Shown here in pieces: positions 891 through 61,121 of a DNA stretch of 64,000 nucleotides. A program made the position numbers and the translations under genes. Origin of the DNA: Zygnema circumcarinatum SAG 698-1b. Lineage: Eukaryota > Plantae > Zygnematophyceae. A model generated the notes under the pieces. That model was given only the letters and a program-made list of their open reading frames with translations. It did no database searches and was not told where the DNA came from. The stretch's first letter is position 1; each line of letters begins with the position of its first letter. Location of the stretch: assembly GCA_037447605.1 (NCBI GenBank), contig CM074812.1, forward strand, positions 558,001 to 622,000, given 5' to 3'.

Positions 891-2980
891 CGACCAATAT
901 AGCTTTTGTGAAAGGACTGGGATCCACTTTCCCTTTTCGTTTTTATTTACTGGGATCAAGGGAGCACATTTGCAACGCCAGATTTCAGAAGCGTGTAATC
1001 GACGGCTGATATTGCAGTTTTGAGAATCGGACGGACGTACAATTGACGCGTCAAATCGGATTTTTAGACTAATGGGCAAAGATCCACTTTGCCACGGAAA
1101 TGGATGTGGAGGTGGACCTTGACGGTTGAGATTCGTCAAGGTGGGGGACTCACGATATTGGAGAACCATGTTTTTGAACTATCCAATGCTTATTCGACAC
1201 GTGTAATAGTTTATGCACGTTTCGTAATACTATTGGTGGAAATTTGAGAGGTTGACCCTCGGGCCTGGCCAACCGAGGGACTTGGACTTTCAGTTGATCT
1301 GATCCATTTCTTAAGTTTCGTATATCGGAGGGTCCAAAATGCACTTGGCGTTTTCCCATTGGTTTAATTCACTACCGTAACTTGGAGTGGCCCCTGGGTG
1401 CTGTACAGAGGGATACAAAACTGTACGGTATTGTACAATTCTGTGCGCAAAAATTGTTTTTTTCCAAACACGCCAAAAATGTGTCCCGCTAACGACGCAC
1501 GATTGGTCGGCCGCACATGCGACGCATTTAAATTTTAGCCCAACCGAAAAAGTCAAACAAGGAGGCTCATCTGATTGGCCCAAAATGCAGTTACACTTGT
1601 CGTTTTGAAAGAAATCGGTGCACTAGCAGCCAGAATGCATTTAATCCATATTTTTTGTCGTTTCTTGAATCTAGACGAAAAGTATCTGTGAGGAACTTTC
1701 AAACAAACTTGGGGCCGCGGCACCGTACGGACCGCTATAGACAATCGTGTGGCTGAGAGCAGTCAAAAACGACAAATAAAATTTCTATCGGTGTCGGCAG
1801 ATACGTCCAAATCGTAATCAGATACGATCTCCAAAAATCCGGCCTTTCGATACTTCCAAATCTTGAATCATGCTTATTGCCGTACTATAGTACGGTCTGA
1901 CTCCTGTAGGAATCGGTCCGATGAAATACAGCGGGACAGTGGGACTCCTTCACGGTCCAGATTTCCGCCAATTAGAGCGTACCACGTCAGATACGTACAC
2001 CGTGTCATACTGCCATTGGATCCCGCTTAGCGCGAAAGCTCCGACTGTACATGCATAAAATCAAATTAAAATCGCGAGTTCAATGAAATTTTCCACTCTC
2101 ATAATATGAGGAACCACGAAGAACTTTTGAACACAGCCACTGCCACGTTGGCAAGCATCTGACGTGACATGCGCTGATAGACCGAGATTCCCGTCATGTC
2201 TCGCCCAATGAAATGTTGCCTTTTTCCATGAACGAGTGAACGGCATCATGACACATGGCACTTTGACACGTGGCGCAATCTAGGCCTCAAATTTCACTGA
2301 ACGCGCCTGCGCGGGCAGCCGAGGTGCCCTGAAATTTGCTGACTTCTTTTAGTCATGGGGCTGGCCTGTGCCTTTAGTCAACCTTTGAGGGACACTCCTG
2401 TAACACCACCCGAGGTGTACCATACACTAAACGACAAAGGCATTCTCGACCTTACCGTACGGACACTGACTGGAGCTGGATTTGCGGACGTTGTCCGAAT
2501 CGACTACAGTTCTGTAATGTACGGTATGGTACGGTACATACGGTCATGGTCAAGATTTTCAGAAGTTGTACGAACGTTCCCGATTGGCTACCATAAGCAC
2601 CGACTGTACACGTGGGCCAATCCTGACGGTCCGCTGCCAGCCCCAAAAAAAAAAAATCAAAAAACAAGAAACTAGAAACCCGAAAACCGCGAAACCCCTA
2701 AAACCCGAAATCGTTTTTTCCACCTCCACGAATTGTTCTAGTTTTTGACGGCGGCAATTTTGGCCGGCAACGGCAGAGGCCCAAGACTTGCCGGTCGGTC
2801 GGTTATTGCCAGTTTACAAAACGACAGAACAGTTCAACCGACAAACGTTCTGACACCCGATCCAGCTGGCCGACTAACAGTAAAACTGAACAGGTTGAAA
2901 AAAAAAGAAACTCAAGATTTTTGGCTATTGAAAAAAACTTTCAAAACCAGTTTCTCTAAAGAAAACCTTACATTATTGTA

Positions 2981-29101: not shown

Positions 29102-29151
<50 letters not shown>

Positions 29152-39363: not shown

Positions 39364-40633
39364 CTACTCCTTCTTGCCCGCAAAGCGCTCCCCGATGTCG
39401 AGATCATCCGCCCTCCCCTTCCTCCCAAATGCCACCTCATCAAGGCTCTGTCCCGCCCGCCTGTACTTCCCCCCTGCCTGCACGAGGGAGGGGCAGGGCC
39501 GGTACGCTTTGATGGGCCACCACGAGAACAGGGAGATGGCCGCAAGGCCGCCCTGCTCACTCGTAAAAACAAAGAGAAAAGAAAAAAAAGAAGGATGAAG
39601 GGAGTGTCTAAGAGAGCAATTGGCTTGTGTATCCAGTAAATGGGTGCTTTTTATTGGGATATGTTTTAGGGTTTCAGATGAAGAAACAGTCGTCGAAAAG
39701 GGATACGCCGCAACTCCATGACTAACTAAGTAACTATGCTGGAGGGGAGGGGAGGGAGGGAGNNNNNNNNNNGGAGGGAGGTAGGGAGGGAGGGAGGGAG
39801 GGAGGGACCCAACAACCCAAAAACTGAACATCCCAAGACTCTGTGAAGTAAAGTAACCATTACAGTTTTTTTTTTTTTTCCTTGTAGGAGGGGTGGGGGG
39901 TTGGATGAAGTACAGAAATGCAATAAATACATAGAATGAAATTTATCCAATGCAGAAAATTTTAGGGTTTCTTAGAGTTTTTAGGATTTTACCTGAATCC
40001 TCCCCTCTCCGTCGCAGCCTCCCTGCACGCTCTCCCTCCCGCACGCCGAGCAGCCGCCAGCTGGCACCGCCTTCACAGACTCTGTGAAGGCACCACGTGT
40101 CCACACACAGAGAGAAAAGCAGGGTTTAGGGTTTTGGATCAGAGGGAAGTCAGTCGTCTGAATATGAGCAAAATTAGGGTTTTGAATATCCTGGTAACGT
40201 TTCACTACAGGACAAAAACCCAAACCCTGAAAAACCCCAAAAAACACAAAAAACAAACCTAAACCCTCAACCCCAAAAAATTCTAAGCCCCCAAAACCAC
40301 TAAATCCCAACACACCAAGAACACGCAAATTCTCAAAACCCTAAAACCTTAAACCCAAAACCCTAACCCCTAAACCCTAAGCCCTAAACCCGACGCTCGC
40401 TCACCTTTCTCCTCCACGGAAGCCGAAGCCTCCTCTCCCGCCGCCATGGCCCTCCATGGAATCCTTCCCCGTGCAGACCTGCTCTCCCCCCTGCCCCCGT
40501 TCACACTGGACTCGGTTCCGTTGCTCGGACCTGACCCCGAAATGCGAACCCTGTTCACACCAGCGCGGCTCGGCAGGGGGGCGGAGAGGGAGAGGAGGGG
40601 GGCGGGGGAGGAGGAGAGCAGAGCGACCGCCAT
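39364..40633 (-). CDS. Small plastid-targeted Cys-rich protein (DnaJ-type zinc-finger-like motifs)
   Basis: Exons 40633-40405, 40081-39993, 39552-39364 (~168 aa). Transit-like N-terminus, then CSACG..CDGEGRIQGG...WWPIKAYRPCP...GGKYRRAGQSLDEVAFG, a motif I recognise from conserved green-lineage uncharacterised proteins. Confidence 0.8.
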
Positions 40634-41599
40634 GGCTGGGGCTTCAGAGAGCTGGAGTTTAGGGTTTAGGTTTAGGGTTTCGACAGTGAAGAAAGCTAAA
40701 GGGTTTATGGTCATCCTGTCGCGTACGGAAATACTACGGAACCCTGGTAGGCTTCCGTACTATTTCCGTACGCTCGCCGATCGGCGGTACAGTACGGTCA
40801 TCTGGATCGTCCGTACATGTAAGTGATACTTCTCACATACGGGGAAGCTATTTACACACCTTTATTGGCTAGATACACACCTTTTCCAACGGTAAGTTTT
40901 TAGGGTTTTTATTAAACCAAAAAGGTGTGTCTAGCAAAAAAAGTGTCTAAATAGTAAATTCCTATCAACATTCTCAACATTTCCTTTCAACATCGCAGAT
41001 ATCTCCATATCGTCCATTTTCTCAATATCGCCAATATTCTTAAAATTGTCATGGCATCATATTAACAATATCAATATATCGTCCATATCGTTAATATCGC
41101 CATAGTCGAACTTGCGTTCTCCCGAGGAGCAAGAGCCAACAGTCGCGTTCACACTCCAAAGCGGGCGGACAACGACGGCAGATTCGTTCGTATGGAAGTT
41201 GGTCCTGTCCCGGCCTGCGCCATGGGATGATGTGCGCCCACGCTTGCGGGGGCATGCGCGCATGGGCGCGCGTAGTTGAGTTGTGGGACAATGCCGTGCA
41301 ATGTGCGAGTGCCATGTGCTAGAGCTTGTTAAACCACCGTGGGTCCACATGTCCTGCCTGGCACATTGCGTTTGTGTTTGAGCCAGCCATTGGCAACCGA
41401 GTACGCGATTCATGGCCTATGAGAGTCAATACGAACTTGCACTTTGGGCCGCCATCCATTGCGAAGTACTGTTGAGAATCTGAGAGAATCCTCCATTTAC
41501 TCGATTTTGTATACGTGGCGAATTGCCAATGGAGAATGCCCGACAACAGCTCACAACGGAGACAGGCCGTTGAACTTGCCTTCGCTCGACTCACACACT

Positions 41600-41706
41600 G
41601 TACAATGTTCCGTGCCATACATGTTTGTACAGTAGTCTCATGGACGGCACGGGTACTTGTACTGCAGCCATGATCGTACAGTTCGTACATGTTGTACAGG
41701 CCGTAC
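41600..41706 (+). promoter_or_regulatory. GTAC cluster (8 copies) upstream of FRO copy 1
   Basis: GTAC at 41600, 41627, 41653, 41659, 41676, 41685, 41694 and 41703, about 630-730 bp upstream of the ATG. Confidence 0.5.
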
Positions 41707-42333
41707 GGAATTTACCTCTCCGGGCACGCGCCAAAAGAGGATCGCACGCACACTCACGCATGTCCCGCACACTCGCACGTGCGCGAGGCTCGCGGCCAAT
41801 GTCAAGTTACCACGTGCGCATGGCGGCTCGTTCCGTGCGCTCAGCGGCCACGTGGCCAGTTCTTAGGATCTATGAAGCCGAAATTGTAGCCAATAGCCAG
41901 ATGCCACGTCATATATATAGATACGGATGCGACGTACTTGTGACATCGTCACGAGCCATTTTGAGCAAGTCGAATCGTTTCACTCAAAAGAGGCCGAGGC
42001 TCAACATTGCTCACTCTCACCAAACATGACTCACCCTGTTACCGAACAACGCAAAATGTCAACTCAGGTTCACTCAATCCACCCATGCAAACTTGACTCG
42101 CCACATATCAATCCTCAAATTAACTCAACGTGCCATATTTCCAAATGTCGGTGTCGACATTTGTTGCTGCTAGCTCCGGCGGGCGGCGGACGGCTTCAAA
42201 AGGGAGGGAGGCGCCGCCCTTTCAAGCAGAGCCTCCCTCCCTCCCTCCCTCCCTTCCTCCCTCCCTCCCTCCCTCCCGCCCTCCCTCGGCCTCAGTAAGA
42301 GAGGCTTCCTGCTTTCGGTCCGCCATTTCAGCC

Positions 42334-45300
42334 ATGGCTACAGGGGAGGAGAGACCCCGCGCTTCCTTCTTAACAGTGGGGTGAGTGAGTGCGTGCATGC
42401 GTGTGTGGGGGAGGGGGGTCTGCTTCCTTCCTTCTTCTGCTGCTGCTGCTGCTGCTGGGCATGCTGGGGCTGCTCAGCATTGTGACGCGTGGCAGAGTGA
42501 CACTGCTTCTCCCCAGTGTGAGTAGCACAGTCAGTAGAAGGGAGAAATTTTGATCTAACGGTTCAAAGGGGGCGAGGAGGGGGGGGGGCGCAGATGGGCG
42601 TACGCGCTGCTGGCCACAATGTGGGGCGCGTGGCTTCTTTGGATCGCCGAAATGTGGGGCCCACATACATGCCTTGATATCCTTCACTTGCAGGGAAGCT
42701 GGAGATATCGCAGCCTTAGTTTAACATTTGAAAGTGAATGAATTGCAGGTATTTCAAGCCGTTGTCTTGGTGGGGGGACTGGCCCAAGAAGATTGGTCGA
42801 TCGGAATATCTCGACAGAACAGGTAGAGCCCCCACCTCTTTCCCTATCCTCTCCCTCTCTCTCTCTCTTTCGCTCTCTTTCTCTCTCTCGCGCCGCCCCC
42901 TCTCTCTCGCTTTCTCCCTCGCCCTCACCCCACCCCCTTCCCCCAACCCCTCGCTTCTCCATACTCTACTAAAGCCGCTTCCTGTTTGCTGCAGACGGCT
43001 ACTGGGTGTTCATGATTGTTCCCCAGCTTCTGGTCACAGTGTTGGCGTATCTCTACCTCAAGATCGACCGCCGCCAATTCCCCAACAGGTCTGCAACTCT
43101 CTTATCGATCGCTATGCCACGTGTCCCCCATGCATGTATGCATGCATGCTCCACCATGCGCTGTGCTTCAATGGACCCATAGACACAGTCCGATTGATTG
43201 ATTGATTATTTGAATGATTGAATGCCGAGCCCCAATCTGACCAACGCCGCCGCCGCGTGCCACGTGGCAGGAGCCTCCCGGGCGGCAAGGCCCCCGCGCG
43301 GTGGGCGCGGACCGTCGTTGTGGCGCAGCGCTCTTTGGGAGTGCTCTCACTCAGCGAACTCTTCTGGATCGCTGTCACAGTCGCCCTCCTCGCATGGTAC
43401 ATCGGCCGCACTACATGGAAAGGCTGGCGCGTATTGGAGGCACGGCTGGCGCGTTCAGCTCACATGCAAGGGGCGGTGCATGTGTCCTTCAACATGTGCG
43501 TCTATCCACGCCTACTCCCCAGCGCTCTCTCGCGCGTTGGGAGGGAGGGAGGGAGGGAGAGAGGGGGAGGGGACGGAGGGAAGGGAGGGAGGGCGGGAGG
43601 ACCAGAAACGGAAATCTTTAATTGGTGAATGATCACGTATATCGTTGTTAGAGCGGGGCGCGCAGGTGGCAGAAGAAGGTGGACAAGCTTTTCCAGAACG
43701 TGGGATGGGGGTCGAGGATCCTTCTCTTTGTCATGTTCTTCCCGGTCAGTCGGAGCTCCCCTCTGCTGCGCGCCACTGGAATTCCGTACGAGAAGGCGCT
43801 AACGTACCACCGCTGGATGGCACACGGCATGCTCTTTCTGGGGACCGTCCATGGCGTGGGATACTGCATTCTGTGGCTACTCGAGGGGAAGTTCGATGAG
43901 AACGTGAGATTATCAAAGCCACCTTCTTACGTTTTGGGTTGCTATCCTTTCTTCATTGTCTGAAAGGATTTTGGCCCTATGATTCTTTGAAGTTGGTTCT
44001 TGTGCTTTGCATTGTGGTCTCACGTCGAGTCTAGTATTCAAGACATCATTGTTGTCTTTTGCATTATCGTATCAGATTGTTTGGCGTGACTAAGGATGAC
44101 TAACCATGTTGGTTTCTATTGCGGATGGGTTTGGCAGGTGTCGCTGTGGCAGGAGCACGACATCAACTATTTGGCTGGCGAGATTTGTCTCATCTCAGGA
44201 CTCGTGATTTGGGTCACATCCATCGGGCCCGTTCGCCGCCGAATGTTTGAATTCTTCGTCAGAACTCATCAGGTGCAAGGCAACCATCACCTGTGAGCAG
44301 TGTATAGAAGTTGCATGCTATAAGTAGCACGGTATTCACTGATGCCCGTTGCAATGTGCTATCGTGATTTTTGCAGATTGTCTATCTCATCTTCATAGTC
44401 TTCTTCATGATGCACGTTTACGACAAGTGGATTCACGTGATGTTCCCTTCGATCCTACTGTATGGCATCGACCGCATTCTGCGTATAGCACAGGGCATGC
44501 ATCTCGTGCAGGCGCAGTGTGTTGCCATTCTCAAGGATGGCAGCGTTGAGCTTACTTTGCCCATAGCCGAAGGTTTGTCAAACTCTTGCTCACCCCCCAA
44601 TCTCACTCTCTCGTTCCCACTCTCTCCTTCTCTTTCTCTCTTTCTCTCTCTGCCTCTCTCCCTCTCTCCCTCTCTCCCGCTCTCCCTCTCTCCCTCTCTC
44701 CCTCTCTCCCTCTCTCCCTCTCTCCCTCTCTCCCTCTCTTCCTCGCTCCTTCTCCCTCTCTCCCTCTCTCCCTCGCTCCCTCTCTCCCTCTCTCCCTCTC
44801 TCCCTCTCCCCCTCTCTCCCTCTCTCCCTCTCTCCCTCTCTCCCTCTCTCCCTCTCTCCCTCTCTCCCTCTCTTCCTCGCTCCTTCTCTCCCTCTCTCCC
44901 TCTCTCCCTCTCTCCCTCGCTCCCTCTCTCCTTCTCTCCCTCTCTCCCTCTCTCCCTCTCTCCCTCTCTCCCTCTCTCCCTCTCCCTCTCTCCCTCTCTC
45001 CCTCTCTCCTCTCTCCCTCTCTCCCTCTCTCCCTCTCTCCCTCTCACCCTCTCTCTCTCTCCCTCTTTCCCTCTCTCCCTCTCTCCCTCTCTCCCTCTCC
45101 CTCCTCTCCCTCTCTCCCTCTCTCCCTCTCCCTCCTCTCTCCCTCTCTCCCTCTCTCCCTCTCTCCCCCTCTCCCCCTCTCCCCCTCTCCCCCTCTCCCT
45201 CTCCCCTTTCCCTCTCTCCCTCTCCCCCTCCCCCTCCCCCTCCTCCGCCCCCTCCCCCTCCCATTGCCAATCCCTCTCTCTCCCGCGGGTCGCAGACGTG

Positions 45301-47173
45301 GCGTACAAGGCCCTAGACTCGGTGTTCGTGAACGTGCCCCTCCTCTCGCAGGCGCAGTGGCACCCCTTCAGCGTCTGCTCGAGTCCGCTCGACGGCCGCC
45401 GCAGCCTCCGCCTCGTGGTCAGGCCCTCGGGCCATTGGTCCTGCGCGCTGCGCCGCCTGGCGGCCGCCAAAGAGCCCCTCCTGCTCCGCGTCGAGGGGCC
45501 GTACGGCCAAGAACAGGACTACTTTGCAAAGTGCGTAAGAATAGTACGGATCTTGTTCTTGTCGTTGTTTTTTCTTTGAGAATGAAGATGGGTATTGACC
45601 AGATGTTAAGGAAGAGGGGATTGACGAAGGAGGAGGCTCCGTTTGTGCAGGTACGACTCGCTCGTTTTGATCGCCGGCGGCAGCGGAATCTCCCCGTTGA
45701 TGTCTTTGTTGCGGGACTTGCTTCACCGATGTCACAACAGGCAGCAGAGGTTGATTTCTATCCAATTTGTGACTTTTTAGGGTTCAGTTGTGATACGCTA
45801 TGTATTATCTGCAGTGTTTCTTACTCATCACTCCATTCTTGGCGGCTCCATTGCAGGTTGCCTTCCAGCATCACTCTCGTGTGGTCCGTGAAGACCTCCT
45901 CCTCGCTGCACCTTTTGGAGGGTATCCAGGCGGCCTCCATCTGTCCGGACTACGACCAATTCGTGAACGTCAACATCGATCTCTATGTGACTGAAGAGGC
46001 CTCCGCCGGCGAAGAGCAGGACAAGCCCCTCCTGGAAATGACTCGACAGACATGGAAACCCATGTACCCCATGGTTCCCCAAGTCGCCGCAGGTGCCTTT
46101 TTTCTTGTCAACATTGAGAAAGCAAATCTCGTTGAGAATAAGGACCTTGGCCTGTCCTTGCATGTCTTCTACAGCTTAATCTGAGGCTTCTAATCTAATC
46201 TAATCTAATTTAATCTTAATCTTTGAATAATATAAACTGGTTGTGATTCCATGTCTGTGTGCAGGCCGAGACCTCGCATCACTTCTCGTATACATGTTTA
46301 TTGGTGGGGGCACATTGTTTTCTATCGTCATGTTCTCCCGGTTCCTCGTGGTTCCTCTTAATGGGCAGTCGTTCGCAGTCATCCCCTTGTGGGTGCGCAG
46401 CCTCATATACATTGCCGCCTTCTTGCTTGGCCTCTTCGTCCTCGCGGGAATAGCGGTGGGGGGGTGGTACCTTATTCGACCCCTACTTCTTCTTCGTCGT
46501 GATACTTCCGATGTGAGCATCTTCACTAACCTTTAAGTAAGGCTTGAACATTAGAAACAATCTTAGAAACACGTGAGCTATCTCTTGACACGCTATTTCT
46601 TGGTCGCAGTATTTCGCAATCACTGAATGCTATCTCATGAGTATAAGCATGTGCAGAATGTCAAACTCGGAGAGGCTACTACGGAGCTGATTGAGCGGGA
46701 GTCTTCGATTCCCAAGGGGGAAACCCTCTCATTTTTGCAGCAGCCAAGCATCACTTACGGCTCTCGCCCCAACATTGCCGGTATGCGTTGCTTGGCGACA
46801 ACAACGAAAAGCAATCTAGACACATATAACGACATCCTCACTTCACGATTTGCCCCACCATGGACCCGAACTAATAGTGCTACTCTGAGAGCTTTGTTAA
46901 GGGTTGTAGGATTCTTGATTCATTAGAAGCTCATTGAAATGTTTTGCACATGCCCATGCCAATGCCCCATGGTGTGATCTTGCAGACGTGCTCTCCAAAG
47001 TTATGGAGAATTCCATGGTGCGGGATGTCGGCGTGCTGGTGTGCGGGCCGTACGGAATGGAGGTCGACGTGGCGGAGCAGTGCAGGCGGCGCAGCGCCGG
47101 ACCGCTCTCCCTCCCCTTCTCGTGCGGGAAGCGGCCCGTCCTCAACTTCCACAGCCTCTCCTTCACTATGTGA
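42334..47173 (+). CDS. FRO: Ferric/cupric reduction oxidase (FRO family), copy 1
   Basis: 13 exons: 42334-42380, 42749-42822, 42995-43088, 43271-43495, 43666-43903, 44138-44272, 44377-44572, 45296-45530, 45651-45749, 45857-46092, 46265-46512, 46657-46780, 46986-47173 (~712 aa). Motifs: FFPVSRSS..L...[13 protein letters not shown] (heme His), [31 protein letters not shown] (FAD), [20 protein letters not shown] (NADPH), [16 protein letters not shown]. Confidence 0.95.
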
Positions 47174-48031
47174 AAGGATGAGAAGCATGTTTTTGTTGTG
47201 TGTTATAAGGGACGAACCAGAAAGTAGAGTGAAAGGAAGGGGAAGTGTGAAAGGCTGCCGCCTTTTGACGAGTTTGTTTTGGGTAGAGGAGGTTCATCTG
47301 TATGGGAGAATGGGATGTTGGAGGGGATGAAGTGAGCTGTAGGGATGTAGGCCTTTCAGTTGCCGTGAAAGGTGTTTGCACGAAACTTATCGTGATGGCC
47401 AAAAAAATAATACAGAAGGCATGTTTTTCCTTGTTCATGTGCTCATCTCGCTCTCCCTCTCTCTCTCTCCCTCTTTCTCTCTCTCACTCTCTCTCTCTCC
47501 CCCCCTCTTTCTCTCACACTCTCTCTCTTACTCACCTTTCCCTCGTTACCACAGCACTGCATTCCCTCTTCTATATCGGCCCGTATCCACTCTCTCTCTC
47601 ACTCAAAATATAAACATAACCATTTGTATTGATATGAAACACGGCCATAGCATGAAACTACCTAATGTTACATGTTAAACACAACCAACTCCACTTTGAA
47701 CTTGGAACCCAATGTTCCGCAGCCTCCACATGTCAGCTCATATCTTGCTCACTCCCTCTTCCTGCTCTAACGCGTGGACCAACCACAACTGTCCACGTTA
47801 GTGACGAGCATAGCTGGATTATTCAGATCGGCAAGTGCGATGGTACAATGATGCAATGGGACCCCACCCCATGATCCAAGCAACAACTTATACGAAAAGT
47901 TACCAAGACTACAAGTGTTGTGTTCAACAAAAATGTCAGTCGAATGGAATGGAATGGATTTCATGACCCATGGAGTTTGGGGGACTTGTTGTTCGTGCAA
48001 TACAATTTCAACACAATATCGATAAATATAG

Positions 48032-49355
48032 GGAGAACTATATACCGCCCCCCTTTTTTGGTTATCCCGCCACTGTTTTTTTGAAATCCGACCCTCCCAT
48101 TTCGGCTATTCTGCCCCCCTCCCCCATTTTGGATATTTCGGGAGGAGATCGCCCCCCTGTTTTGAATATTTCTTTCCCGCCCCTCCCGTCCTCTCCCCGC
48201 CCCTCCCCTGCCCTCCCCCTCCCCTTCCCTTCCCTTCCTTTCCTCTTTCGCAGAAAGAAAGTGAAAGAGAGTGAGAGAGAGAGAGAGCAGAGTGAGAGCA
48301 GAGGAGAGAGACTACAGGAGAGAGCAAAGGAGAGAGAAGAGAGAGAGAGAGCAAAGGAGCGAGAGCCGAGTGAGAGCAGAGGAGAGAGAGACTAGAGGAG
48401 AGAGCAAAGGAGAGAGCAAAGGAGAGAGAGAATGAGCAGAGGAGAGAGCAAAGGAGAGAGAGAATGAGCAGAGGAGAGAGCAAAGGAGAGAGAGAGAGAG
48501 AGTGAGTAGAGTAAGAGCAAAGGAGAGAGAGACTAGAGGAGAGAGCACAGGAGAGAGCAAAGGCGAAAGAGAGAATGAGCAGAGGAGAGAGAAGAGGAGA
48601 GAGAAAGACTAGAGGAGAGAGAGCAGAGGGGAGAGAGAGAGAGAAAGAGAGAGAGAGAGAAGACAGAGCAAGCAAGCAAGCCAACCATTACATCATGACA
48701 GAGCTTCACACTCACCAAAAGAAAAAGGATAAAAAGAGAATAAAAAGTTCCTAAATATAGAAAAAAATCGCAAACCGAGAGGAAGAAGGGAAGGGGAGGG
48801 GTGGGCAGGGGAGGGGAGGGAGGAGGGAGGGAGGGAGGGGAGGGGTGGGCAGGGGAGGGAGGGAGGGAGGAGGGAGGGGAGGGGTGGGCAGGGGAGGGAG
48901 GGAGGGGAGGAGGAGGGAGGGAGGGAGGGAGGGAGGGAGGGAGGGCGGAGGGAGGGAGGGAGGGGAGGGGAGGGAGGGAGGAGGGAGGGAGGGAGGTGGG
49001 CAGGGGAGGGAGGGAGGAGGAGGAGGAGGAGGGAGGGAGGGAGGGAGGAGGGAGGGAGGGAGGGAGGGAGGGAGGGAGGGAGGAGGGAGGGAGGGAGGGA
49101 GGAGGGAGGGAGGGAGGGAGGGGAGGGGAGGGAGGGAGGGAGGGAGGGAGGGAGGGAGGGGAGGGAAGGGGAGGGAGGGGAGGGGAGGGAGGGAGGGAGG
49201 AGGGGAGGGGCGGGAAAGAAATATTCAAAACAGGGGGGCGATCTCCCGAAATATCCAAAATGGGGGAGGGGGGCAGAATAGCCGAAATGGGAGGGTCGGA
49301 TTTCGAAAAAACAGTGGCGGGATAACCAAAAAAGGGGGGCGGTATATAGTTCTCC
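48032..49355. mobile_element. Non-autonomous Mutator-like element (MULE), 1324 bp
   Basis: ~150-bp near-perfect TIRs GGAGAACTATATACCGCCCCCC... / ...GGGGGGCGGTATATAGTTCTCC. Exact 9-bp TSD TAAATATAG (48023-48031, 49356-49364). Interior is mostly GA tracts. Confidence 0.92.
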
Positions 49356-49766
49356 TAAATATAGTCGTAAATTTCGTCAATATAGTCAATATAGTCAATA
49401 TAGTCAATATAGTCAATATTGTCGTGAATATCGTCAATATCGTCGTCAATGCCGTCAATATCGTCACCAATATCGCCAATATCGGCCTACTCTAACTTGC
49501 GTACTCCGAGCACGAGCCAACAGTCACGTTCACACTCCAAAGCTGGCAGACAATGCCGGCAGATTTCTCGTACGGAAGTCAGTCCTGCCGCGGCCTGCGC
49601 CATGCGAGGATGTGCGCCCGCCCCGCACAGTTGAGTTGTTGTTGAGTTGGTTGGCGCGCGCAGTTGAGTTGTGGCACAATCCCGCGCAATGTGCAAGAGC
49701 TTGTTGACCCACCGCGGGTCCACATGTCGAGCACATTGCGCTTTAGTTTGAGCCAGCCATTGGCAA

Positions 49767-50862
49767 GGAAAATGATACTTCGCCCCCCCCCCTTTGGGTT
49801 ATCCCGCCCCATTCATTTTTTGAAAACCCGCCCTCTCATTTTGACTATTCCATCCCCCCCCCCTCCTCTCCCCATTTTGGATATGTCGGGAGGAGATAAC
49901 TCTTCCCCTTTCCACCCCTACACCTGCCCTCCCCTCCGGTCCTCTCCCTTCCCCCCCTCCCCTCCCCTCCCTCTTCTCCCCTGCTCTCCCCTCCCGTCCT
50001 CTCCCCTCCCCTCGCCTTCATTCCCCTCCTCTTCTCGGTTTGCAATTTCCAAAGAAATGACTGAGTAAAAGACTCGCGATGAGTTTGTACAAGTCATGAC
50101 CGAGCACTACAAGCACGAAGGATTTCACATCAATATCGGCAAGCATAGCGACAGCCGCTGACTCTACCTGCAATGCTACTCTCCTCTAACTGCTCTCTCC
50201 CCTCTAGTCTCTCCTCTTCTCTCTCCTATGCTCTCTCCTCTGCTCTATCTCTCTCTCTCCTCTGCTCTCTCTCTCTCTCGCTCTCCTCTTCTCTCCCTCT
50301 CTCTCCTCTGCACTCCTTTACTCTCTCTCTCGCTCTCTCCTTTACTCACTCTCCTCACTCCTTTACTGCTCTATCTCTCTCTCTCCTCTACTCTATCTCT
50401 CCTATACTCTCTCTCTCCTTTGCTCTGTCTCCTCTAGTCTCTCTCTCCTCTGCTCTCTCTTTTCTGCCCCCTCTCCGCTAGTCTCTCCTCTGTTCTCTCT
50501 CTCTCTCGTCTGCTCTCTCTCTGTTTTCTCTCCTCTGCCCTCTCCTCTGCCCTCTCTCACTCTCCTCTGCTCTCTCTCTCTCCTCTGCTCTCTCTCTCCT
50601 CTGCTCTCTCTCTCCTCTGCTCTCTCCTCTGCTCGCTCTCCTCGCCTCTCTCTCCTCTGCTCTGCTCTCTCAGCGAATGTGTCGTTACGGACGTTGCGCT
50701 GATGTGTGACAAGGAGAAAACAGGGGGGTGAATGTCCAAAATGGGGAAGGGCTGGATAATCGAAAACAGAGGGCGGAATAGCCAAAATGGGAGGGCGGGA
50801 TTTAAAAAAAAACGGGGCGGGATAATCCAAGGGGGGTTGGGGAGGGGGCGAAGTATCATTTT
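49767..50862. mobile_element. Related MULE-like element in the FRO copy 2 upstream region
   Basis: TIRs AAAATGATACTTCGCCCCC / GGGGGCGAAGTATCATTTT, continuing ~100 bp with TTATCCCGCC and CCCATTTTGG motifs shared with the 48032 element. Internal (CTCTCCTCTG)n is the reverse complement of that element's GA repeat. Absent from the homologous copy-1 promoter. No TSD found. Confidence 0.7.
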
Positions 50863-50955
50863 GAAACGAATCGTGGCGAATCGCGAATCGCGATTGGAGG
50901 ATGCTCGACAACAAGGTGGCCGTTGTGGAACTTCCCTTCGCTCGACTCACACACT

Positions 50956-51248
50956 GTACAATGTTCCGGGCCGTACAGGTTTGTAGTACCGTACAAACAT
51001 GGACGCACGAGTGCTTGTACTGTACAGTACTGTAGCCATGATCGTACAGATCGTACAGAAGATACAAATTTTGCATGCCGTACATAATGTACATGTGACT
51101 GGATTGTACAAATTTTACAGGCCTTACAGATCGTACATGCCATCGATCGTGCACAATTTACAGATTGTACAAATTGTACATATCCAGTACAGTACTGTAC
51201 AGTACTGTAATCAGATTGTACAAATCGTACAGGCCGTTCGGACCGTAC
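50956..51248 (+). promoter_or_regulatory. Dense GTAC array (22 copies) upstream of FRO copy 2
   Basis: 22 GTAC counted by hand in 293 bp, many in CGTAC/CCGTAC/TTGTACA contexts, about 680-970 bp upstream of the ATG. Confidence 0.65.
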
Positions 51249-51924
51249 ATGGTGCTGTCCCCTCTGAGGGCACGCGCCAAACGAGAATCGCACGCACTCT
51301 CGCACGTCACACGCACACTCGCACGTGCGAGAGGTTCTTGTCCAATAGAAAAGTGTCACGTGAGCATTGTGGCTCGTTCCGTGCCCTGAGCGGCTACGTG
51401 GCCAATCCTACGCTCTGTGGTGCTGACATTTTAACCAATAGCCAACTGCCACGACAATTATTTTTAGTACGGATATGACGTACTTCATGACACCGTATCG
51501 AGCCATTTTTGAGCAAGTCGAATTCGTTTCACTCAAAAATAGTTCAAGGCTCAACATTGCTCCCCCTCGCCAAACATGGTTCACCGTTTACGGAACAATG
51601 CAAAATGTCAACTCAGGCTCACTCAATCCAATCATGAAATCTTGACTCGCCTCATATCAACTCAGCTCAAATTAACTCAGCCTGACTGTCGGTGCCGTAT
51701 TTCCAAATGTCGGTGCCGTATTTCCAAATGTCGGTGCCGACATTTATTTTTGCTAGCTCCGGCGGGGGACGGGCGTCTTCAAAAGGGAGGGAGGCGCCGC
51801 CCCTTCGAGCAGAGCCGTCCTCCCTCCCTCCCTCCCTCCCTCCCTGCCTCCCTCCCTCCCTTCCTCCTTCCCTCCCTCGAACTGAGGGTGAGAAAATTCT
51901 TGCTTTCGGTCCACCATGCCAGCC

Positions 51925-54900
51925 ATGGCGGCGGGGGAGGAGAGACCCCGCACTTCCTTCTTGGCAGTGGGGTGAGTGAGTGAGTGTGTGCGTGTGAGGG
52001 AGGGTGAGGGATCTGCTTCCTTCCTTCTGCTGCTGCTGCTACTGCTGCTGCTGGGGCTGCTCAGCATTATTGAAACTGATTCTCCTCGGTGTGAGTAGAA
52101 CAGTCAGTAGAAAGGAGAGCTATTTTGATCTAACGGATTCAACGGGGGGGGAGCGGGTGGGGGGTGGGGGCGCAGATGGGCGTACGCGCTACTGGCCACA
52201 ATGTGGGGCGCGTGGATCCTTTGGATCGCCGAATGGTGGGGCCTACATGCATGCCTTGAGTTCCTTCACGTGCAGGGAAGCTGGAGATATCGCAGCTTTC
52301 ATTTAACATTTCAAAGTAAATGAATTGCAGGTATTTCAAGCCGTTGTCGTGGTGGGACTGGCCAAAGAAGATTGGTCGATCGGGATACCTCGACTGGGCA
52401 GGTGGAAACCCCGCCACTTTCTCTATCCTCTCTTTCTCTCTATCACTCTCTTTCCCTCTCTCTCGCTTTCTCCCTCGCCCTCACCCCACCCCTCCCCCCA
52501 ACCCTTCGTTTCTCCACACTCAATAAAGCCTTTTCCTGTTTGCTGCAGACGGCTACTGGGTGTTCATGGTGGTTCCCCAGCTTCTGGTCACAGTGTTGGC
52601 GTATCTCTACCTCAAGATCGATCGCCGCCAATTCCCCAACAGGTCAGCAACTCTGTCGTCGATCGCGGTGGCACGTGTCCCCCATGAATGTATACATGCA
52701 TGTGTATATACATACATGCAGGCATGCATGCACCACCATGCGCTGTACTTCAAATGACCCATAGTCACAGTCGGACTGATTGATTGATTGATTGATTGGC
52801 GAGCCCCAATCTGACCGACGTCACCGCCGCGTGCCACGTGTCAGGAGCCTCCCCGGCGGCAAGGCCCCCGCGCGGTGGGCACGGACCGTCGTTGTGGCGC
52901 AGCGCTCGTTGGGAGTGCTCTCACTCAGCGAACTCTTCTGGATCGCTGTTACAGTCGCGCTCCTCACATGGTACATCGGCCGCACTACATGGAAATCCTG
53001 GCGCGTATTGGAGAGACCGCCGGCGCATTCAGGTCACATGCATGGGGCGGTGGATATGTCCTTAAAGATGTACGTCTATCCTCGCCTACTCCCCAGCAGC
53101 CCACCAGAAACGAAAATCCTTAATTGTTCAATGGTCACGTCTATCGTTGTTAGGGCGGGGCGCGCAGGTGGCAGAAGAAGATAGACAAGTTTTGCCATAA
53201 CTTCGGATGGGGGTCAAGTATCCTTCTCTTTGTCATGTTCTTCCCGGTCAGTCGGAGCTCCCCTCTGCTGCGCGCCACTGGAATTCCGTACGAGAAGGCG
53301 CTCACGTACCACCGTTGGATGGCACACGGCATGCTCTTTCTAGGCTCTGTCCATGGCGTGGGATACTGGATTCTGTGGCTACTCGAGGGGAAGTTCGATG
53401 AGAACGTGCGGTTATCACCATCACCTCTACCGTTGTTGCCACCTTCGTCACGTTTTGTGTTGTTATCCTTTCCTCGTTGTATTAAAGGATTTTGGGCATA
53501 TAATTCTTTGAAGTTGGTTCTTGTTCTTTGCATTGTGGTCTCACGTCGTCTCTAATATTCAAGACATTCCTTGTTGCCTTTTGCACTATCGTTTCAGATT
53601 ATTCAGCGTGTTTAAGGATGACTAACCATGTTGGCTTCTATGGCGGGTGGGTTTGGCAGGTGTCGCTGTGGCAGGAGCATGGAATCAACTATTTGGCTGG
53701 CGAGATCTGCCTCATCGCAGGGTTTGTGATATGGGTCACATCCATCGGGCCCGTTCGCCGCCGAATGTTTGAATTCTTCGTCAGAACTCATCAGGTGCAA
53801 GGCCACCATCATCTATGAGCAGTGCATAAGAGATGCATGCTACCTATCAGTGGCTCGTTATTCAATAATGTCCGCTGCTATGTGCTATCGTCTTTGTTGC
53901 AGATTGTCTATCTCATCTTCATAGTCTTCTTCATGATGCACCTTTTCGACTTGTGGCTTCACGTGATGTTCCCTTCGATCCTACTGTATGGCATCGACCG
54001 CATTCTGCGTATAGCACAGGGCATGCATCTCGTGCAGGCGCAGAGTGTTGCCATTCTCAAGGATGGCAGCGTTGAACTAACTTTGCCCATAGCTGAAGGT
54101 TCGTCAAACCCACCCCCCCCCCTCTCACTCTCTCGCACCCACTATCTCATTCTCTTTCCTTATGTCTCTTTATCTCTCTCCCTCTCTCCCTCTCTCCCTC
54201 TTCCCCCCCCTCTCCCTCCTCCCTCCCATTGCCAATCCCTCTCTCTCCCGCGGGTCGCAGACGTGGCGTACAAGGCCCTAGACTCGGTGTTCGTGAACGT
54301 GCCCCTCCTCTCGCAGGCGCAGTGGCACCCCTTCAGCGTCTGCTCGAGTCCGCTCGACGGCCGCCGCAGCCTCCGCCTCGTGGTCAGGCCCTCGGGCCAT
54401 TGGTCCTGCGCGCTGCGCCGCCTGGCGGCCGCCAAAGAGCCCCTCCTGCTCCGCGTCGAGGGGCCGTACGGCCAAGAGCAGGACTACTTTGCAAAGTGCG
54501 TTAGAATAGTACGGATCTTGTTCTTGTCGTTGTTTTTTCTTTGAGAATGAAGATGGGTATTGACCAGATGTTAAGGAAGAGGGGATTGACGAAGGAGGAG
54601 GCTCCGTTTGTGCAGGTATGACTCGCTCGTTTTGATCGCCGGCGGCAGCGGAATCTCCCCGTTGATGTCTTTGTTGCGGGACTTGCTTCACCGATGTCAC
54701 AACAGGCAGCAGAGGTTGATTTCTATCCAATTTGTGACTTTTTAGGGTTCAGTTGTGATACGCTATGTATTATCTGCAGTGTTTCTTACTCATCACTCCA
54801 TTCTTGGCGGCTCCATTGCAGGTTGCCTTCCAGCATCACTCTCGTGTGGTCCGTGAAGACCTCCTCCTCGCTGCACCTTTTGGAGGGTATCCAGGCGGCC

Positions 54901-56156
54901 TCCATCTGTCCGGACTACGACCAATTCGTGAACGTCAACATCGATCTCTATGTGACTGAAGAGGCCTCAGCCGGCGAAGAGCAGGGCAAGCCCCTCCTGG
55001 AAATGACTCGACAGACATGGAAACCCATGTACCCCATGGTTCCCCAAGTCGCCGCAGGTGCCCTTCTTCTTGTCAACATTGAGAAAACAAATCTCGTTGA
55101 GAATAAGGACCTTGGCCTGTCCTTGCATGTCTTCTACAGCTTAATCTGAGGCTTCTAATCATGTCATGAGGCTTCTATCGTGTATATCCTACAGCTTAAT
55201 CCTTGAACAATGTAAACTGGTTCTGATGCTGTGTCTGTGTGCAGGCCGAGACCTCGCATCACTTCTCGTATACATGTTTATTGGTGGGGGCACATTTTCT
55301 TCTATCGTCGTGTTCTCCCGGTTCCTCGTGGGTCCTATTGACGGGCAGTCGTTCGCAGTCATCCCCTTGTGGGTGCGCAGCCTCATATACATTGCCGCCT
55401 TCTTGCTTGGCCTCTTCGTCTTCGCGGGAATAGCGGTGGGGGGGTGGTACCTTATTCGACCCCTACTTCTTCGTCGTGATACTTCCAATGTGAGCCTCTT
55501 CACCAACCTAAAGTAAGGCTTGAACATTAGAAACAATCTTAGAAACACGTGAGCCCTCTCTTGATACGCTATCTCTTGGTCGCTGTATTTCGCAAACTTT
55601 GAAGGCTATGTCATGAGTATGAGCATGTGCAGGATGTCAAACTCGGAGATGCTACTACGGAGCTGATTGAGCGGGAGTCTTCGATTCCCAAGGGGGAAAC
55701 CCTCTCATTTTTGCAGCAGCCAAGCATCACTTACGGCTCTCGCCCCAACATTGCCGGTATGCGTTGCTTGGCGACAACACATACACATAACACACAACAC
55801 ATATAACGACATCCTCTCTTCACGAGTTGCCCCACCATGGACCCGAACTAACAGTGCTGCTTTGAGAGCTTTGTTAAGGGTTGTAGGATTCTTGATTCAT
55901 TGGAAGCTCATTGAAATGTTTTACCGATGCCCATGCCCACGTCCATGCCCCACGGTGTGATATTGCAGATGTGCTCTCCAAAGTTATGGAGAATTCCATG
56001 GTGCGGGATGTCGGCGTGCTGGTGTGCGGGCCGTACGGAATGGAGGTCGACGTGGCGGAGCAGTGCAGGCGGCGCAGCGCCGGACCGCTCTCCCTTCCCT
56101 TCTCGTGCGGGAAACGACCAGTCCTCAACTTCCACAGCCTCTCCTTCACTATGTGA
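51925..56156 (+). CDS. FRO: Ferric/cupric reduction oxidase (FRO family), copy 2
   Basis: Same exon series as copy 1 with no disabling change seen. The FAD and NADPH exons are nearly identical, while TM-region residues differ (e.g. KIDKFCHNFGWGSS vs [14 protein letters not shown]; MHLFDLWLH vs MHVYDKWIH). An in-frame upstream ATG lies at 51916. Confidence 0.93.
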
Positions 56157-57553
56157 AAGGATGAGAAGCATGTTTTTGTGATGTGTTATAAGGGACGAAC
56201 CAGAAAGTAGACTGAAAGGAAGGGGAAGTGTTAAAGGCTGCCGCCTTTTGGCGAGTTGTTTTGGGTAGAAGAGTTTCATTTGTATGGGAGTATGGGAGCT
56301 TGGAGGGGATGAACTGGGTGTGAAAAGCTGTAGGGATGAAGGCCTTTCAGTTGCCGTGGAAGGGCTTTTCACGGGAATTATCGTGATGGCGAAAACTATA
56401 ATACAAAAGGCATGTTTTTTCTTATTCATGTGCGCACATCTCTTCCTCTCTCTCACACATTCTCTCCCCCACTTTCTCTCTCTCACTCTCTCTCTCTCCC
56501 TCTTTCTCTCTCTCACTCTCACTGTCTCCCCCTCTTTCTCTCGCTCACTCTCACTCTCTCTCTCTCACTCTCACTCTCTCCCCCTCTTTCTCTCTCTCAC
56601 TCTCACTCTCACTCTCTCCCCCTCTTTCTCTCTTACCCACCTTTCCCTCGTCACCACACCAATGCCTCCCCTCTATATCGGCCAGCATCCACTCCCTCTC
56701 TCACACAAAATACAAACGTCCTCTTGTATTGATATGAAACACGGCCATAGCATGAAACTACGTAATGTTACTTGTTAAGCACAGCCAACTCCACTTTGAC
56801 GTTGGAACCCAACGTTCCGCAGCCTCCACATGTCAGCTCACACCTTGCTCACTCCCTCTTCCTAAACTATGACGGGGGGACCAATCACAACTGTCCACGT
56901 TAGTGACGAGCATACTTGGAACATTCAGATCGGCACATGCGATGGTACAATGATGTGATGAGAACCCACCCCATGATCCAAACAACAACTGTTACGAAAA
57001 GGTGTGAATACTACAAGTGTTGCCTTCAGCCAAAACGTCAGTCTCATGGATTTCATGACCCATGGACTTTGGGGGACTTGTGGTTTGTGCAGCGTCAAAT
57101 GTAGAGCACTCCCCTTAATGTTGTATGGCAATATAATCCGAACGTTGGCATTGAGGCTTTGCATTTGTGGTCATTGTTCTTTGACCTCTAACAAAATAAG
57201 AACCAAAATTTGGAACAACACATGAATGAAACAATGACAACAAAAGTCCATGTGCTTCTTCAATATTGAAAACACCAATCACTGCCTACCACGTGTCCAC
57301 CTCGGCCCACAACAACAGTTTCATTCGCGTTCACACTCAGATCCGCCCAAGTTCCGAGTCAACAAAACGACAAAAAAATGTGACAGCGCGTGACGCCCTC
57401 GCTCCTGAACCCCCTCAAACCCTAAATCGCTTCGAACCACGTGGCGCCTTTCTGCCCTGCCACGTGGAGTCGTGCCCTCTCCCATCACACGTGCCTACCC
57501 ACGTCCTGCCGCCACGTGGACATCTCTCCGCCTGCCACGTTTCAGCTTCCGCC

Positions 57554-58725
57554 ATGCTGAAGTACCTGCTCATTGCCAACAGCGCGGGAAACGTCCTCCT
57601 CGAGCGGTCGGTCCCTTAGCCCTAGACCCCCTCCTATCCTCGGGCCCTGAACCCTAGCGGCAATTTTCTGTCATGAGGTTCAAGGGTTTGGAAACAGGAC
57701 CGGGCGGGTTTAGGGTTGAGAAGTGGGCGGATGGTTTTAGGGTTCAGAAGTGGCCGGATGGTTTTAGGGTTCCGAAGTCGGCGGATCGTTTTAGGGTTCA
57801 GGAGTGAGCGGACGGTTTTAGGGTTCAGAAGTGGGCGGATGGTTTTAGGGTTCAGAAGTGGCGGATGGTTTTAGGGTTCAGGTTCCACGCGGTTCCTTTG
57901 GAGGAGCGCGCGCAGCTCCGCGCGCATCTTGTCAAGCTCGGCGCGGAGGCGCGCGACGAGCAGCACTGCGTGGCCGTCATAAGGTGCAAAATGGGCTTAG
58001 GGTTCAGGGCGCTGAACCCTAGGGGGGGGGGGGGAGGGTTCCTTGTGGATCCTGAATTTTGTTGTTCAACTTTGACATTTGAGATCGATTTTGTTGAACC
58101 TTGAACTTCTGCCGTGAGCTTTGGAACTCTCTTGAGTCCGGAATCCTGTGGATCCTGGATCCTGAGACTTGAACCATGAACCCTGGATAGGACTTTAAGC
58201 TTTAAAACTCTGAACCCTGAATCTTGGAACGCTTATATCATGAACCCTGATTCTTGAACTTTGAAACCTTGAATTTAAACTCTAGTCCTGAACTTTGAAA
58301 CACTCCTGAACCCTGAATCTCGACCCTGCATACTAAACCGCAATAATTCGAACTTTGGAACCCTAAACCCTGAATTCTGAACCCTGAAATCCGAGTATTT
58401 CAACCCTAAAATCCTGAATCCTACTTGTTCAACTCAGCCCGTCCAACCCTGCCCTTAACAGGTTGCATTAGTTTTTATTTCTGTATTGCCGGCCAAAAAG
58501 TTCACAAAAGGTTCTAGGATATAAAATCGAAATATGTGAATGCTTTTAGATTTTATTGGAGTTTTGGGATGACTGTTGACAAGGGTTTTGGGGTTGAGGG
58601 TCGGAGCCAGACAGGACTTTGTCGTGTACTGCGCAGTGCAGGACATCATCATCTATGTTGTCGGCAACAAGGAGTATGACGATCTCGGGTGTAAGTTCTC
58701 TCGCTCTCTCTCTCTCTCTCCCTCC

Positions 58726-58756
<31 letters not shown>

Positions 58757-59701
58757 CCCCTTGCCCCCTTCTCCTCCCCCCCCCACTCTCTCCCCTCATG
58801 GCGCGAGTTTTCAGGGTCTATTTGCTGCCCAGGGTATTTCTACTATGTTTGACACAGCAGAGATTATGTGACAAATGTTCCACCCTTGTTCATTGCCTTG
58901 TTCCATGTGCTTGTTCAACATCAATAGCCGTTTTTCTTCTGATTGGAGTCTTATGAGAAAATTCCGAACAGACGCATCCTGATCACCCCATGCATGCATG
59001 CATGCATGCATGCCTGCATCCCCTTGACCCCATGCATGGATGCTGATGCATGCCGATGCATGCATGCATGCATGCAGTATCGGAGGTGCTGGCCGCGGTG
59101 GTGGCCTCTCTGAAGGACCTCTGCCGCAGCAACCTCCGCGAGGTGCACCTACTCGACCGCTACGGGCGCGCCTGCCTCATGCTCGACGAGATCTGGGCGC
59201 AGGTAGGGGCACACCCGTCCGTCCGTCCAGCAGACACAAAGGGAGGGATAGACACACACAGAGAGAGGGGGCGAGGGGGGGGGGGGAAGAGGGAGAGGGG
59301 GGGAGAGAGAGAGGGAGAGAGAGAGGGGGCGGGGGGGGGGGGGAAGAGGGAGAGGGAGGGAGTGAGAGAGGGAGAGANNNNNNNNNNAGAGGGAGGGAGT
59401 GAGAGAGGGAGAGAGAGAGGGGGGGGGGAGGGGGAAGGCGGAAGGCGGAAGGCGGAAGGCGGAAGGGGGGAGGGGAAGGGGGAGGGGGGACGAGGGGGGA
59501 GTGGGAATGGGCAAGGGCGAGGGCGAGGGGGAGAGGGTGACCTTGTTAGTTAGTTGCCATGAATGGATAGCATGTGTTAGTCACCATTGGCCGTACTAAG
59601 AGAGTTGCGGCTGTTTGGGGTCCTCGCAGGGCATCTTTGAACATACGGACAAAGACCGCATTCGGCGACTGACCCGGCTCAAGCCGATGCCTGACTTTTA
59701 G
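57554..59701 (+). CDS. LOLITA: LOLITA, longin-like small subunit of the TPLATE/TSET adaptor complex
   Basis: Exons 57554-57606, 57882-57983, 58611-58690, 59078-59202, 59630-59701 (~143 aa): MLKYLLIANSAGNVLLERFHAVPLEERAQLRAHLVKLGA...VGNKEYDDLGLSE...LLDRYGRACLMLDEIWAQGIFEHTDKDRIRRLTRLKP, closely matching Arabidopsis LOLITA as I recall it. Confidence 0.9.
57707..57881 (+). repeat. 27-bp tandem repeat with a telobox core in LOLITA intron 1
   Basis: TAGGGTT at 57711, 57738, 57765, 57792, 57819, 57846 and 57872. Unit GGTTTTAGGGTTCAGAAGTGGGCGGAT. Confidence 0.88.
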
Positions 59702-60316: not shown

Positions 60317-61121
60317 GGACTGCAACCTTCCAACAAGGGGTCTAGGAGATGAACGATGTGAGAGATTTCGGGTTGAAGACAATCCGTACTACTTGTACGG
60401 ACAATTGTTCCAAAGTTCCGGACGAGTGTACACTACATTACTTGGCAGAGTTTCGTACATTGTCTACTACTTGACAGGCTTTCTTTGACGTACGATTTGT
60501 ACAATTCTTGCGGTCCGTACGCAATTGACGGAAAAGCCGAACGGCGCCATTTGGCATGCAAAGAGAGCTCCTTGTGTCCTTCACGAGGTCTGTAACCCGA
60601 CCAATGAGGGACGTCCAAGTGGCCAAAATGTATACATGGCAGACGTCCATTGGCCGGATTTTATAAGGACCACGTGGCGTCCTTCCTTCGCTCCGCGCAG
60701 CCATGGCGGCCGGCGGCCTCTGCATGGCGGGGAGGGGAGGGCATGCAGAGGGGGAAGGAGGGCGCGGGGAGGGGGCAGGTGGAGGCTCCGGAAGCTTCGA
60801 AATACAGATATATTTTTCATTTTTTAAGTCCTGCGTTTTTGAAGTGTGTGTGAGAGAGTGGGAGATTGGAACGGCAACTTCAGCATCTGATTCAGGAGGT
60901 TTTTGCTTGAAGCTTTTTCTTTTTCAGATTTTTTATCCGGCTGCTGGTAGGTACCGCATCAATATCGTATTCAGACGACGGCGGAGATATTACAGCAGCA
61001 GAGAGAGGACAGTATTGGAAGATTACTCTGAAAAGAAGAAACCGTGGAATCAGGCTTGCGTTGAGTGTGAGACAGAAGACCTGCCCTTGTATTCAGAGCA
61101 GCAGCAGCAGCAGCCGCCGCC

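Follow-up and report, generated by a model that had tools for sequence, protein, structure and literature searches.

A dense GTAC minisatellite upstream of one of two tandem, conditionally expressed FRO genes in the alga Zygnema circumcarinatum

Upstream of FRO2, the second of two tandem genes predicted to encode plant-type ferric-chelate reductases in Zygnema circumcarinatum SAG 698-1b, 22 copies of the word GTAC lie within 293 bp (positions 50956-51248; copy number as assembled), making this array a clear outlier for GTAC density within the window, by which we mean the whole 64,000-nucleotide stretch of DNA that was analysed. GTAC is the essential core of the sites bound by SBP-domain transcription factors (consensus TNCGTACAA; PMC10796333). 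Judging from its sequence and setting, we think it probable, if only modestly so, that the array is an over-grown form of an SBP-box promoter module, common in this genome, upstream of an inducible FRO gene.

The FRO pair and the GTAC array upstream of FRO2

The two genes and the regulatory regions of FRO2 are placed as follows (evidence in brackets).

42334..47173, plus strand: FRO1 coding region, 14 exons, 732 aa, introns all GT-AG (homology to the FRO2 model)
50956..51248, no strand assigned: GTAC array of FRO2, 22 cores, untranscribed in the RNA runs mapped
51250..51781, plus strand: proximal FRO2 promoter, conserved with FRO1 (alignment, motif search)
51782..51915, plus strand: main transcript 5'-end zone and 5'UTR of FRO2, including a (CCCT)n tract at 51811-51880 (RNA depth jump)
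51916..56156, plus strand: FRO2 coding region, 14 exons, 733 aa (RNA splice joints, gene model, Pfam)

GTAC occurs 186 times in the 64-kb window, against 81.4 +/- 8.2 in dinucleotide-preserving shuffles, none of 100 of which reached 186, so that the word is 2.3-fold over-represented throughout. The expectation per 293 bp is 0.37 from the shuffles, 0.85 at the window's own rate and 1.1 at uniform base composition, the last agreeing with the figure of about one in an earlier note on this DNA, whose counts of 22 cores at FRO2 and eight in the corresponding region of FRO1 are both exact. When GTAC was counted in a sliding 300-bp segment, FRO2 reached 22 and FRO1 nine, followed by clusters of 7, 7, 6 and 5, which upholds the same note's statement that the FRO2 array alone is clearly exceptional. 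Twenty of its 22 cores read GTACA.

The FRO2 model was built from 13 GT-AG splice joints in RNA contigs (runs X1-X3) and extends from an ATG at 51916 to a stop at 56156, with the transcript ending near 56420; FRO1 was modelled by homology. Both genes are intact and their proteins are 92.8% identical. Pfam searches of the exon translations returned the domains Ferric_reduct, FAD_binding_8 and NAD_binding_6, and the FRO2 model contains two His-x13-His heme-ligand pairs, an HPFS FAD motif and the nucleotide motifs GPYG, GGSGISP and CGP, its 733 residues aligning over their full length with plant FROs (28-48% identity). The domains and motifs confirm the identity of the proposed FRO pair, as predicted plant-type ferric-chelate reductases, and a duplicated unit of about 7-8 kb (from ~41004 to 48000 and from ~49377 to 57090) confirms its tandem arrangement. 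The pair was absent from the two protein libraries searched, where the best representative was 46-53% identical.

Identity between the two genes is unevenly distributed. Exons 9-14 (54261-56156 compared with 45296-47173) are mostly 98-99.6% identical, with exon 12 at 95%, whereas exons 1-8 (51916-54098 compared with 42334-44572) are 89-97% identical, with a difference of 5-8% in exons 5-8; at the protein level the C-terminal half reaches 96.7% and the N-terminal half 88.8%. This pattern suggests gene conversion in the 3' half of the pair, or faster change in the 5' half. Intron 8 of FRO1 (44573-45295) measures 723 bp, nearly all of it CT-rich microsatellite that reads in frame as long Leu/Ser/Pro pseudo-ORFs, compared with 162 bp for the FRO2 intron. 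Between the FRO copies (48000-50880) and elsewhere in the window (e.g. 6116-6580, 10972-11096 and 28544-29235) there are dozens of repeat units of ~100 nt, 75-87% alike and partly inside GA/CT-rich tracts.

Anatomy and growth of the array

Several repeated elements make up the array and its surroundings, and a smaller homologous cluster lies upstream of FRO1.

41600..41706, no strand assigned: unexpanded homologous cluster of FRO1, 8 GTAC, with four 9-bp units at 41672-41707
49767..50882, no strand assigned: repeat- and microsatellite-rich stretch of ~1.1 kb, directly 5' of the array and found upstream of FRO2 only (alignment)
51017..51034, no strand assigned: first (GTACW)n run, 5-bp period, self-complementary (TRF, repeat search)
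51040..51249, no strand assigned: degenerate minisatellite, 9-bp period, unit GAT[C/T]GTACA (TRF, repeat search, autocorrelation)
51187..51209, no strand assigned: second (GTACW)n run, perfectly repeating the first in inverted orientation (TRF, repeat search)

The regions upstream of FRO1 and FRO2 align as homologues (41004-41396 with 49377-49766, and 41518-41612 with 50883-50968), as the earlier note had claimed for the arrays themselves, and FRO2 has the FRO1 cluster plus ~165 bp of extra GTAC units. Growth by local duplication, also proposed there, is borne out by autocorrelation peaks at lags of 9 and 18, by the periods of 5, 9 and 10 of the pieces that TRF found in the array, and by a block of four to five units (~38-44 nt), present once at FRO1, which occurs three times in the FRO2 array (starts 51058, 51102 and 51214) at 63-84% identity. 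The array is thus a minisatellite in the usual sense of a tandem repeat of fixed period. Because the block copies are only 63-84% alike, its duplications are not recent.

Seventeen head-to-tail units fit the 9-bp register. GTAC is kept in 12 of them, while decay has turned the remaining five into, for example, GATACA, TTTACA and CTTACA. Sites have also turned over between the paralogues: CCATACA in FRO1 stands opposite CCGTACA in FRO2, while GTGC and CCGTTCGG in FRO2 stand opposite GTAC and CCGTACGG in FRO1, and each paralogue lacks some GTAC sites that the other keeps. As five of 17 units have decayed and sites have been lost in each paralogue, constraint on individual sites is weak, and part of the FRO2 array may be neutral repeat.

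A stronger form of this idea is that all the excess sites at FRO2 reflect neutral minisatellite expansion, through slippage or unequal exchange of the GTAC-containing 9-bp unit, and that 22 sites do no more than eight. We consider this unlikely, though far from negligible. The clear 9-bp periodicity and the block duplications are what such a process would leave, and the decayed units, the site turnover and an expression of FRO1 comparable to that of FRO2 (below) point the same way, in a genome where microsatellites are rampant (e.g. the CT-rich FRO1 intron and the 1.1-kb insertion beside the array). However, conservation within the unit is far from even: the TACA positions hold 1.4-2.0 bits and the G before them ~1.0 bit, compared with 0.45-1.0 bit at the four spacer positions, and this better-kept core hints at selection or gene conversion. 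The persistence of 22 cores through an expansion that is not recent also argues against neutrality.

FRO transcription and the promoter words of the window

Up to 51781, RNA contig depth stays at or below 17; it then jumps to 1,400-6,900 in the next bin, 51782-51978, whose end falls in exon 1. This puts the main 5' end of FRO2 between 51782 and ~51880, inside or beside the (CCCT)n tract. The array is therefore situated some 535-925 bp upstream of that end, and its depth is 0 (bin 50994-51190) in all four RNA runs mapped, so that it consists of multiple GTAC cores in untranscribed DNA upstream of a start, as expected of an SBP-box/CuRE cluster. The proximal promoter downstream of it contains CGCACG repeats (51289-51325), CACGTG at 51322 and 51357, ACGTG at 51396 and CCAAT boxes at 51342, 51402 and 51435; both FRO promoters keep three ACGTG elements along with four to seven CGCACG-type repeats. 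A TATA-like motif at ~51455 (41912 in FRO1) was rejected as the core promoter, since high-depth RNA begins only after 51781. Run X1 also has a single unspliced contig, of depth ~10, over 51305-51716, in the proximal promoter immediately 3' of the array; it may reflect a minor upstream start, nascent RNA or carry-over of DNA.

Expression of the FRO pair is very high in runs X1-X6 (at least six runs) and almost off in run X7. In runs X1-X3, from two studies, 262-890 contigs fell on FRO2 and their word depths summed to 1e4-3e5, contig word depth being a crude measure of expression. In X7, from a third study, FRO2 depth is 0-5, yet a correctly spliced joint was seen. Because X7 is nearly without FRO although the neighbouring gene (57300-59300) is well covered, with 66% of its sampled words present compared with 4% of those of FRO2, we conclude that the FRO pair is conditionally expressed. 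Runs X8-X10 contain words of neither FRO2 nor the neighbouring gene and say nothing on FRO expression, and absence from the run lists was rejected as evidence of no expression, since each list gives a lower bound of six runs.

The relative output of the two genes can be read from the only two exonic alternative letters reported (54969 A>C and 56096 T>C), both of which are the FRO1 state. These letters make up 17-63% of the depth where a FRO1-type contig was assembled and are absent in the remaining runs; FRO1 is therefore co-expressed with FRO2, within the same order of magnitude. The earlier note had expected the paralogues to be tuned by copy number (8 and 22 sites), with FRO2 above FRO1, an expectation that does not agree with these proportions: the extra FRO2 sites bring no visible large expression advantage over FRO1.

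Across the window, the most over-represented non-repeat hexamers (dinucleotide model) were CACGTG (9.5x), CGTACG (8x), CCGTAC (6.3x), CGTACA (6x) and TGTACA (5.7x), with CCGTAC alone found 53 times against 8.5 in shuffles, and G-box and SBP-box words are its two dominant non-repeat motifs. The presence of SBP-type words among the two most over-represented promoter motifs suggests that SBP factors have a much broader role in this lineage than in Arabidopsis. Words of the ATGCAT/GCATGC type are also enriched (4.5-4.9-fold), and AACCCTA-type hexamers are over-represented window-wide. The ORF/codon-usage gene map of the window is too noisy, its exons being short, for more than the six gene starts that were placed. 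Clusters of six or seven GTAC copies, reported previously at three further places, are all present:

2417..2609, no strand assigned: seven-site GTAC cluster, directly 5' of the CCAAT, G-box, A-run and telo-box of a plus-strand promoter (motif count)
36330-40714, minus strand: glycosyltransferase family 28 (MurG-like) gene, head-to-head with FRO1 and encoding a transit-peptide-like N-terminus (Pfam)
40723..40816, no strand assigned: six GTAC sites of CCGTAC type, clustered at the 5' end of the MurG-like gene (motif count, Pfam)
60386..60520, no strand assigned: cluster of seven GTAC sites lying 600-740 bp before the ATG (at 61122) of a DUF3339 gene; CCAAT boxes and a G-box come next

The three share a layout of GTAC cluster, then CCAAT/G-box, then start. 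They have in common with the FRO arrays the core word and a position 5' of CCAAT/G-box promoter regions, but are mainly of the CCGTAC/CGTACG type, have six or seven sites and lie closer to the gene, whereas the FRO arrays exceed them in size, show periodicity and abound in TGTACA/AGTACW. Sites of the form WGTACW account for 13 of 22 cores at FRO2 and four of eight at FRO1 (17/30), compared with 6/29 in the other clusters (Fisher p=0.007, or p=0.09 with duplicated units collapsed). A confinement of GTAC clusters to metal genes, as implied by the earlier proposal, does not hold: clusters also stand at the MurG-like gene, at the single-exon DUF3339 gene and at a third promoter, with GTAC and CCGTAC enriched window-wide, and within the window they are not restricted to copper-economy or copper-uptake genes. 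Pfam searches of the ORFs flanking the cluster at 1400-2600 gave no matches. The MurG-like gene product is probably plastid-targeted, pointing to plastid peptidoglycan synthesis.

G-box clusters occur at nine islands (e.g. six words at 32401-32800 and five at 57201-57600), among which only the two FRO promoters pair a G-box cluster with a GTAC cluster; the G-box-only promoters near 57560 and 32975 have 1-2 GTAC per kb. Since several promoters with G-box clusters are without a GTAC cluster, a promoter does not require the GTAC module simply to be active.

Possible readers of the array, and other features of the window

The array grew out of an eight-site cluster, still seen at FRO1, through duplication of 9-bp units (GAT[C/T]GTACA) and ~44-bp blocks that later partly decayed. 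If it is an SBP-box module, SBP-domain transcription factors would bind its many sites; those spaced by 9 bp could be occupied together, while those spaced by 5 bp would probably compete. Together with the G-box/CCAAT/CGCACG region, the array would drive a very strong, conditional transcription of FRO2, for which the most likely trigger would be metal shortage, of either copper or iron.

Both FRO genes might instead belong to an iron-deficiency regulon (or one responding to pH or another stress) that acts via the proximal G-box/CGCACG/CCAAT region, the GTAC cluster being a generic module that carries no metal signal. We regard this as doubtful but as a serious contender. It would account for the ACGTG and CGCACG-type elements conserved between the two promoters, although we know of no link between CGCACG repeats and iron in streptophytes, and G-box clusters are themselves generic in the window. 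The GTAC clusters at genes with no known metal link are as expected of a generic module, but the FRO arrays are by far the densest of the window and differ from the others in flank flavour. Ferric reductases are, moreover, classic iron-deficiency genes both in Chlamydomonas, where the ferrireductase FRE1 is such a gene and is not described as a CRR1 target (PMC3759009), and in plants, where FRO2 and FRO3 are (PMC3968747).

Copper control of the FRO pair is possible, and the next reading to weigh is that of a CuRE super-array read specifically by a CRR1/SPL7 orthologue, FRO1 and FRO2 being copper-starvation-induced cell-surface Cu(II) reductases whose 8 and 22 sites set their outputs. GTAC is the core of the copper-response element (CuRE), and in Chlamydomonas the CuREs of CYC6, CPX1 and CRD1 are read by CRR1, whose targets respond to copper, nickel or hypoxia. 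The likeness to these elements lies in a GTAC core upstream of a nutritionally regulated gene and in an expected SBP-domain reader (predicted in the alga); the difference lies in number and position, the Chlamydomonas promoters having one or two sites, close to the start, compared with 22 in the algal array.

The closest parallel is Arabidopsis, where FRO4 and FRO5 are tandem, SPL7-dependent genes with several GTAC boxes (PMC3968747), and where SPL7, through GTAC, and the bHLH factor CITF1, through the E-box, both bind the FRO4, FRO5 and COPT2 promoters (PMC9266912). The algal genes share with them the tandem arrangement, the multiple GTAC and E/G-boxes upstream and a strongly conditional expression, switched on and off between RNA runs, and the pairing of GTAC and G-box clusters only at FRO promoters is like that of SPL7 and CITF1 targets, even if G-boxes are generic in the window. 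The sites preferred by Arabidopsis SPL7 are (A/T)GTAC(T/A), AGTACA/TGTACT and GTACTRC (PMC9516184), as against the CCGTAC of developmental SPLs, and the excess of WGTACW in the FRO arrays would fit this preference, albeit at a significance that weakens (p=0.09) once duplicated units are collapsed. In density, the array exceeds known SPL7 targets: eight GTAC are found in the SPL7-bound ChIP peak of FSD1 and eight in the CITF1 promoter (PMC9516184, PMC9266912). Like these, the FRO2 array is a homotypic GTAC cluster with several W-GTAC-W sites, but it has ~3x as many cores, is a periodic minisatellite and lies 0.5-0.9 kb from the start. It differs from FRO4/FRO5 too in its far higher density, with 22 boxes in 293 bp rather than 'several', and a response to copper and binding by SPL7, both demonstrated in Arabidopsis, are hypothetical for the algal genes.

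In a maximum-likelihood tree, the algal FRO falls in a well-supported four-row clade with P0001, P0002 and P0003, the last a protein with a EukProt 'SM...' identifier, presumably from Spirogloea muscicola; exact-product searches for P0002, P0003 and the DUF3339 protein returned no match. This clade lies outside the branch that holds the FRO8-type and FRO1/2/3-type land-plant proteins of the sampled set, in which AtFRO4/5 are not included. The algal pair thus appears to be a lineage-specific duplication, independent of and not orthologous to AtFRO4/5; as it stands outside all sampled land-plant FRO clades, its likeness to the AtFRO4/FRO5 tandem would be convergent, as would any SPL7-FRO parallel with these genes. 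In the 1.5 kb upstream of one FRO paralogue per species there are two GTAC in the liverwort Marchantia polymorpha and none in Riccia fluitans, which speaks weakly against an ancestral GTAC-FRO link. The tree and the liverwort loci together tell against the earlier suggestion that an SPL7-FRO circuit might be ancestral. Literature searches on a general CCGTAC promoter motif in algae, and on FRO or copper in zygnematophytes, found nothing useful.

Taken with this lack of orthology and the absence of a cluster at the two liverwort loci, the GTAC clusters at genes without a known metal link, the iron response of Chlamydomonas FRE1 (PMC3759009) and the share of FRO1 letters, which is a poor fit to strong tuning by copy number, make the copper reading rather improbable as a whole, and we would judge copper specificity of the array, taken by itself, in the same way. 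Distinctly unlikely, in our view, is a more ambitious scheme in which a CRR1/SPL7-type sensor would drive a lineage-specific pair of Cu(II)/Fe(III) cell-surface reductases via the densest natural CuRE array yet seen (22 cores/293 bp) and bHLH G-boxes, wired independently of the Arabidopsis SPL7-CITF1-FRO4/5 system. In that scheme, other SBP paralogues would read the CCGTAC-flavoured clusters of most remaining promoters, and flavour would set a metal regulon apart from a more general code of SBP promoter sites. An origin of the FRO2-specific segment from a GTAC-bearing transposable element (MITE or LTR) is so improbable that we reject it, for although there is an 18-nt perfect inverted repeat (51017-51034 and 51188-51205) and a repeat-rich insertion right beside the array, the inverted repeat is self-complementary (GTACW)n whose left arm is already in FRO1, the additional DNA keeps the 9-bp register of the ancestral units, its 38-nt blocks copy a block shared with FRO1, and neither a target-site duplication at the array nor a second copy within the window was seen.

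This kind of cis-regulatory cluster is already known, and the main value of the FRO2 array is as a test bed and a possible switchable promoter. If it is a working platform for SBP factors, it would be an extreme natural homotypic cluster of binding sites made by minisatellite growth, and the eight-site FRO1 beside the 22-site FRO2 offers a natural experiment on site number and output. Should the pair prove responsive to copper (or to nickel or hypoxia), FRO genes in the algae that are sister to land plants would have come under an SBP copper sensor by convergence, and the promoter could serve zygnematophyte genetics as a strong switchable one, as the CYC6 promoter does in Chlamydomonas. The wide enrichment of SBP words may matter more than the FRO2 array itself.

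Other features of the window include telo-box-like AAACCCTAA words at 40640-40700 and 2670-2700, in the presumed 5'UTR/core promoter of the MurG-like gene and of the promoter at ~2700, and 21 CATGCA/TGCATG words in the 400 bp of 58801-59200, a (GCATGCAT)-like microsatellite within the gene that neighbours FRO2. Rfam and tRNA scans returned nothing near any GTAC cluster. They placed a 5S rRNA gene at 31336-31454 (Rfam 92.8 bits), in a gene-poor stretch, and near it a tRNA-Ser(CGA) at 30110-30192 and an 87-nt tRNA-Pro(CGG)-like ARAGORN call at 31994-32080. Four assembly gaps of 10 N each are located at 13001-13010, 16943-16952, 39763-39772 and 59378-59387.
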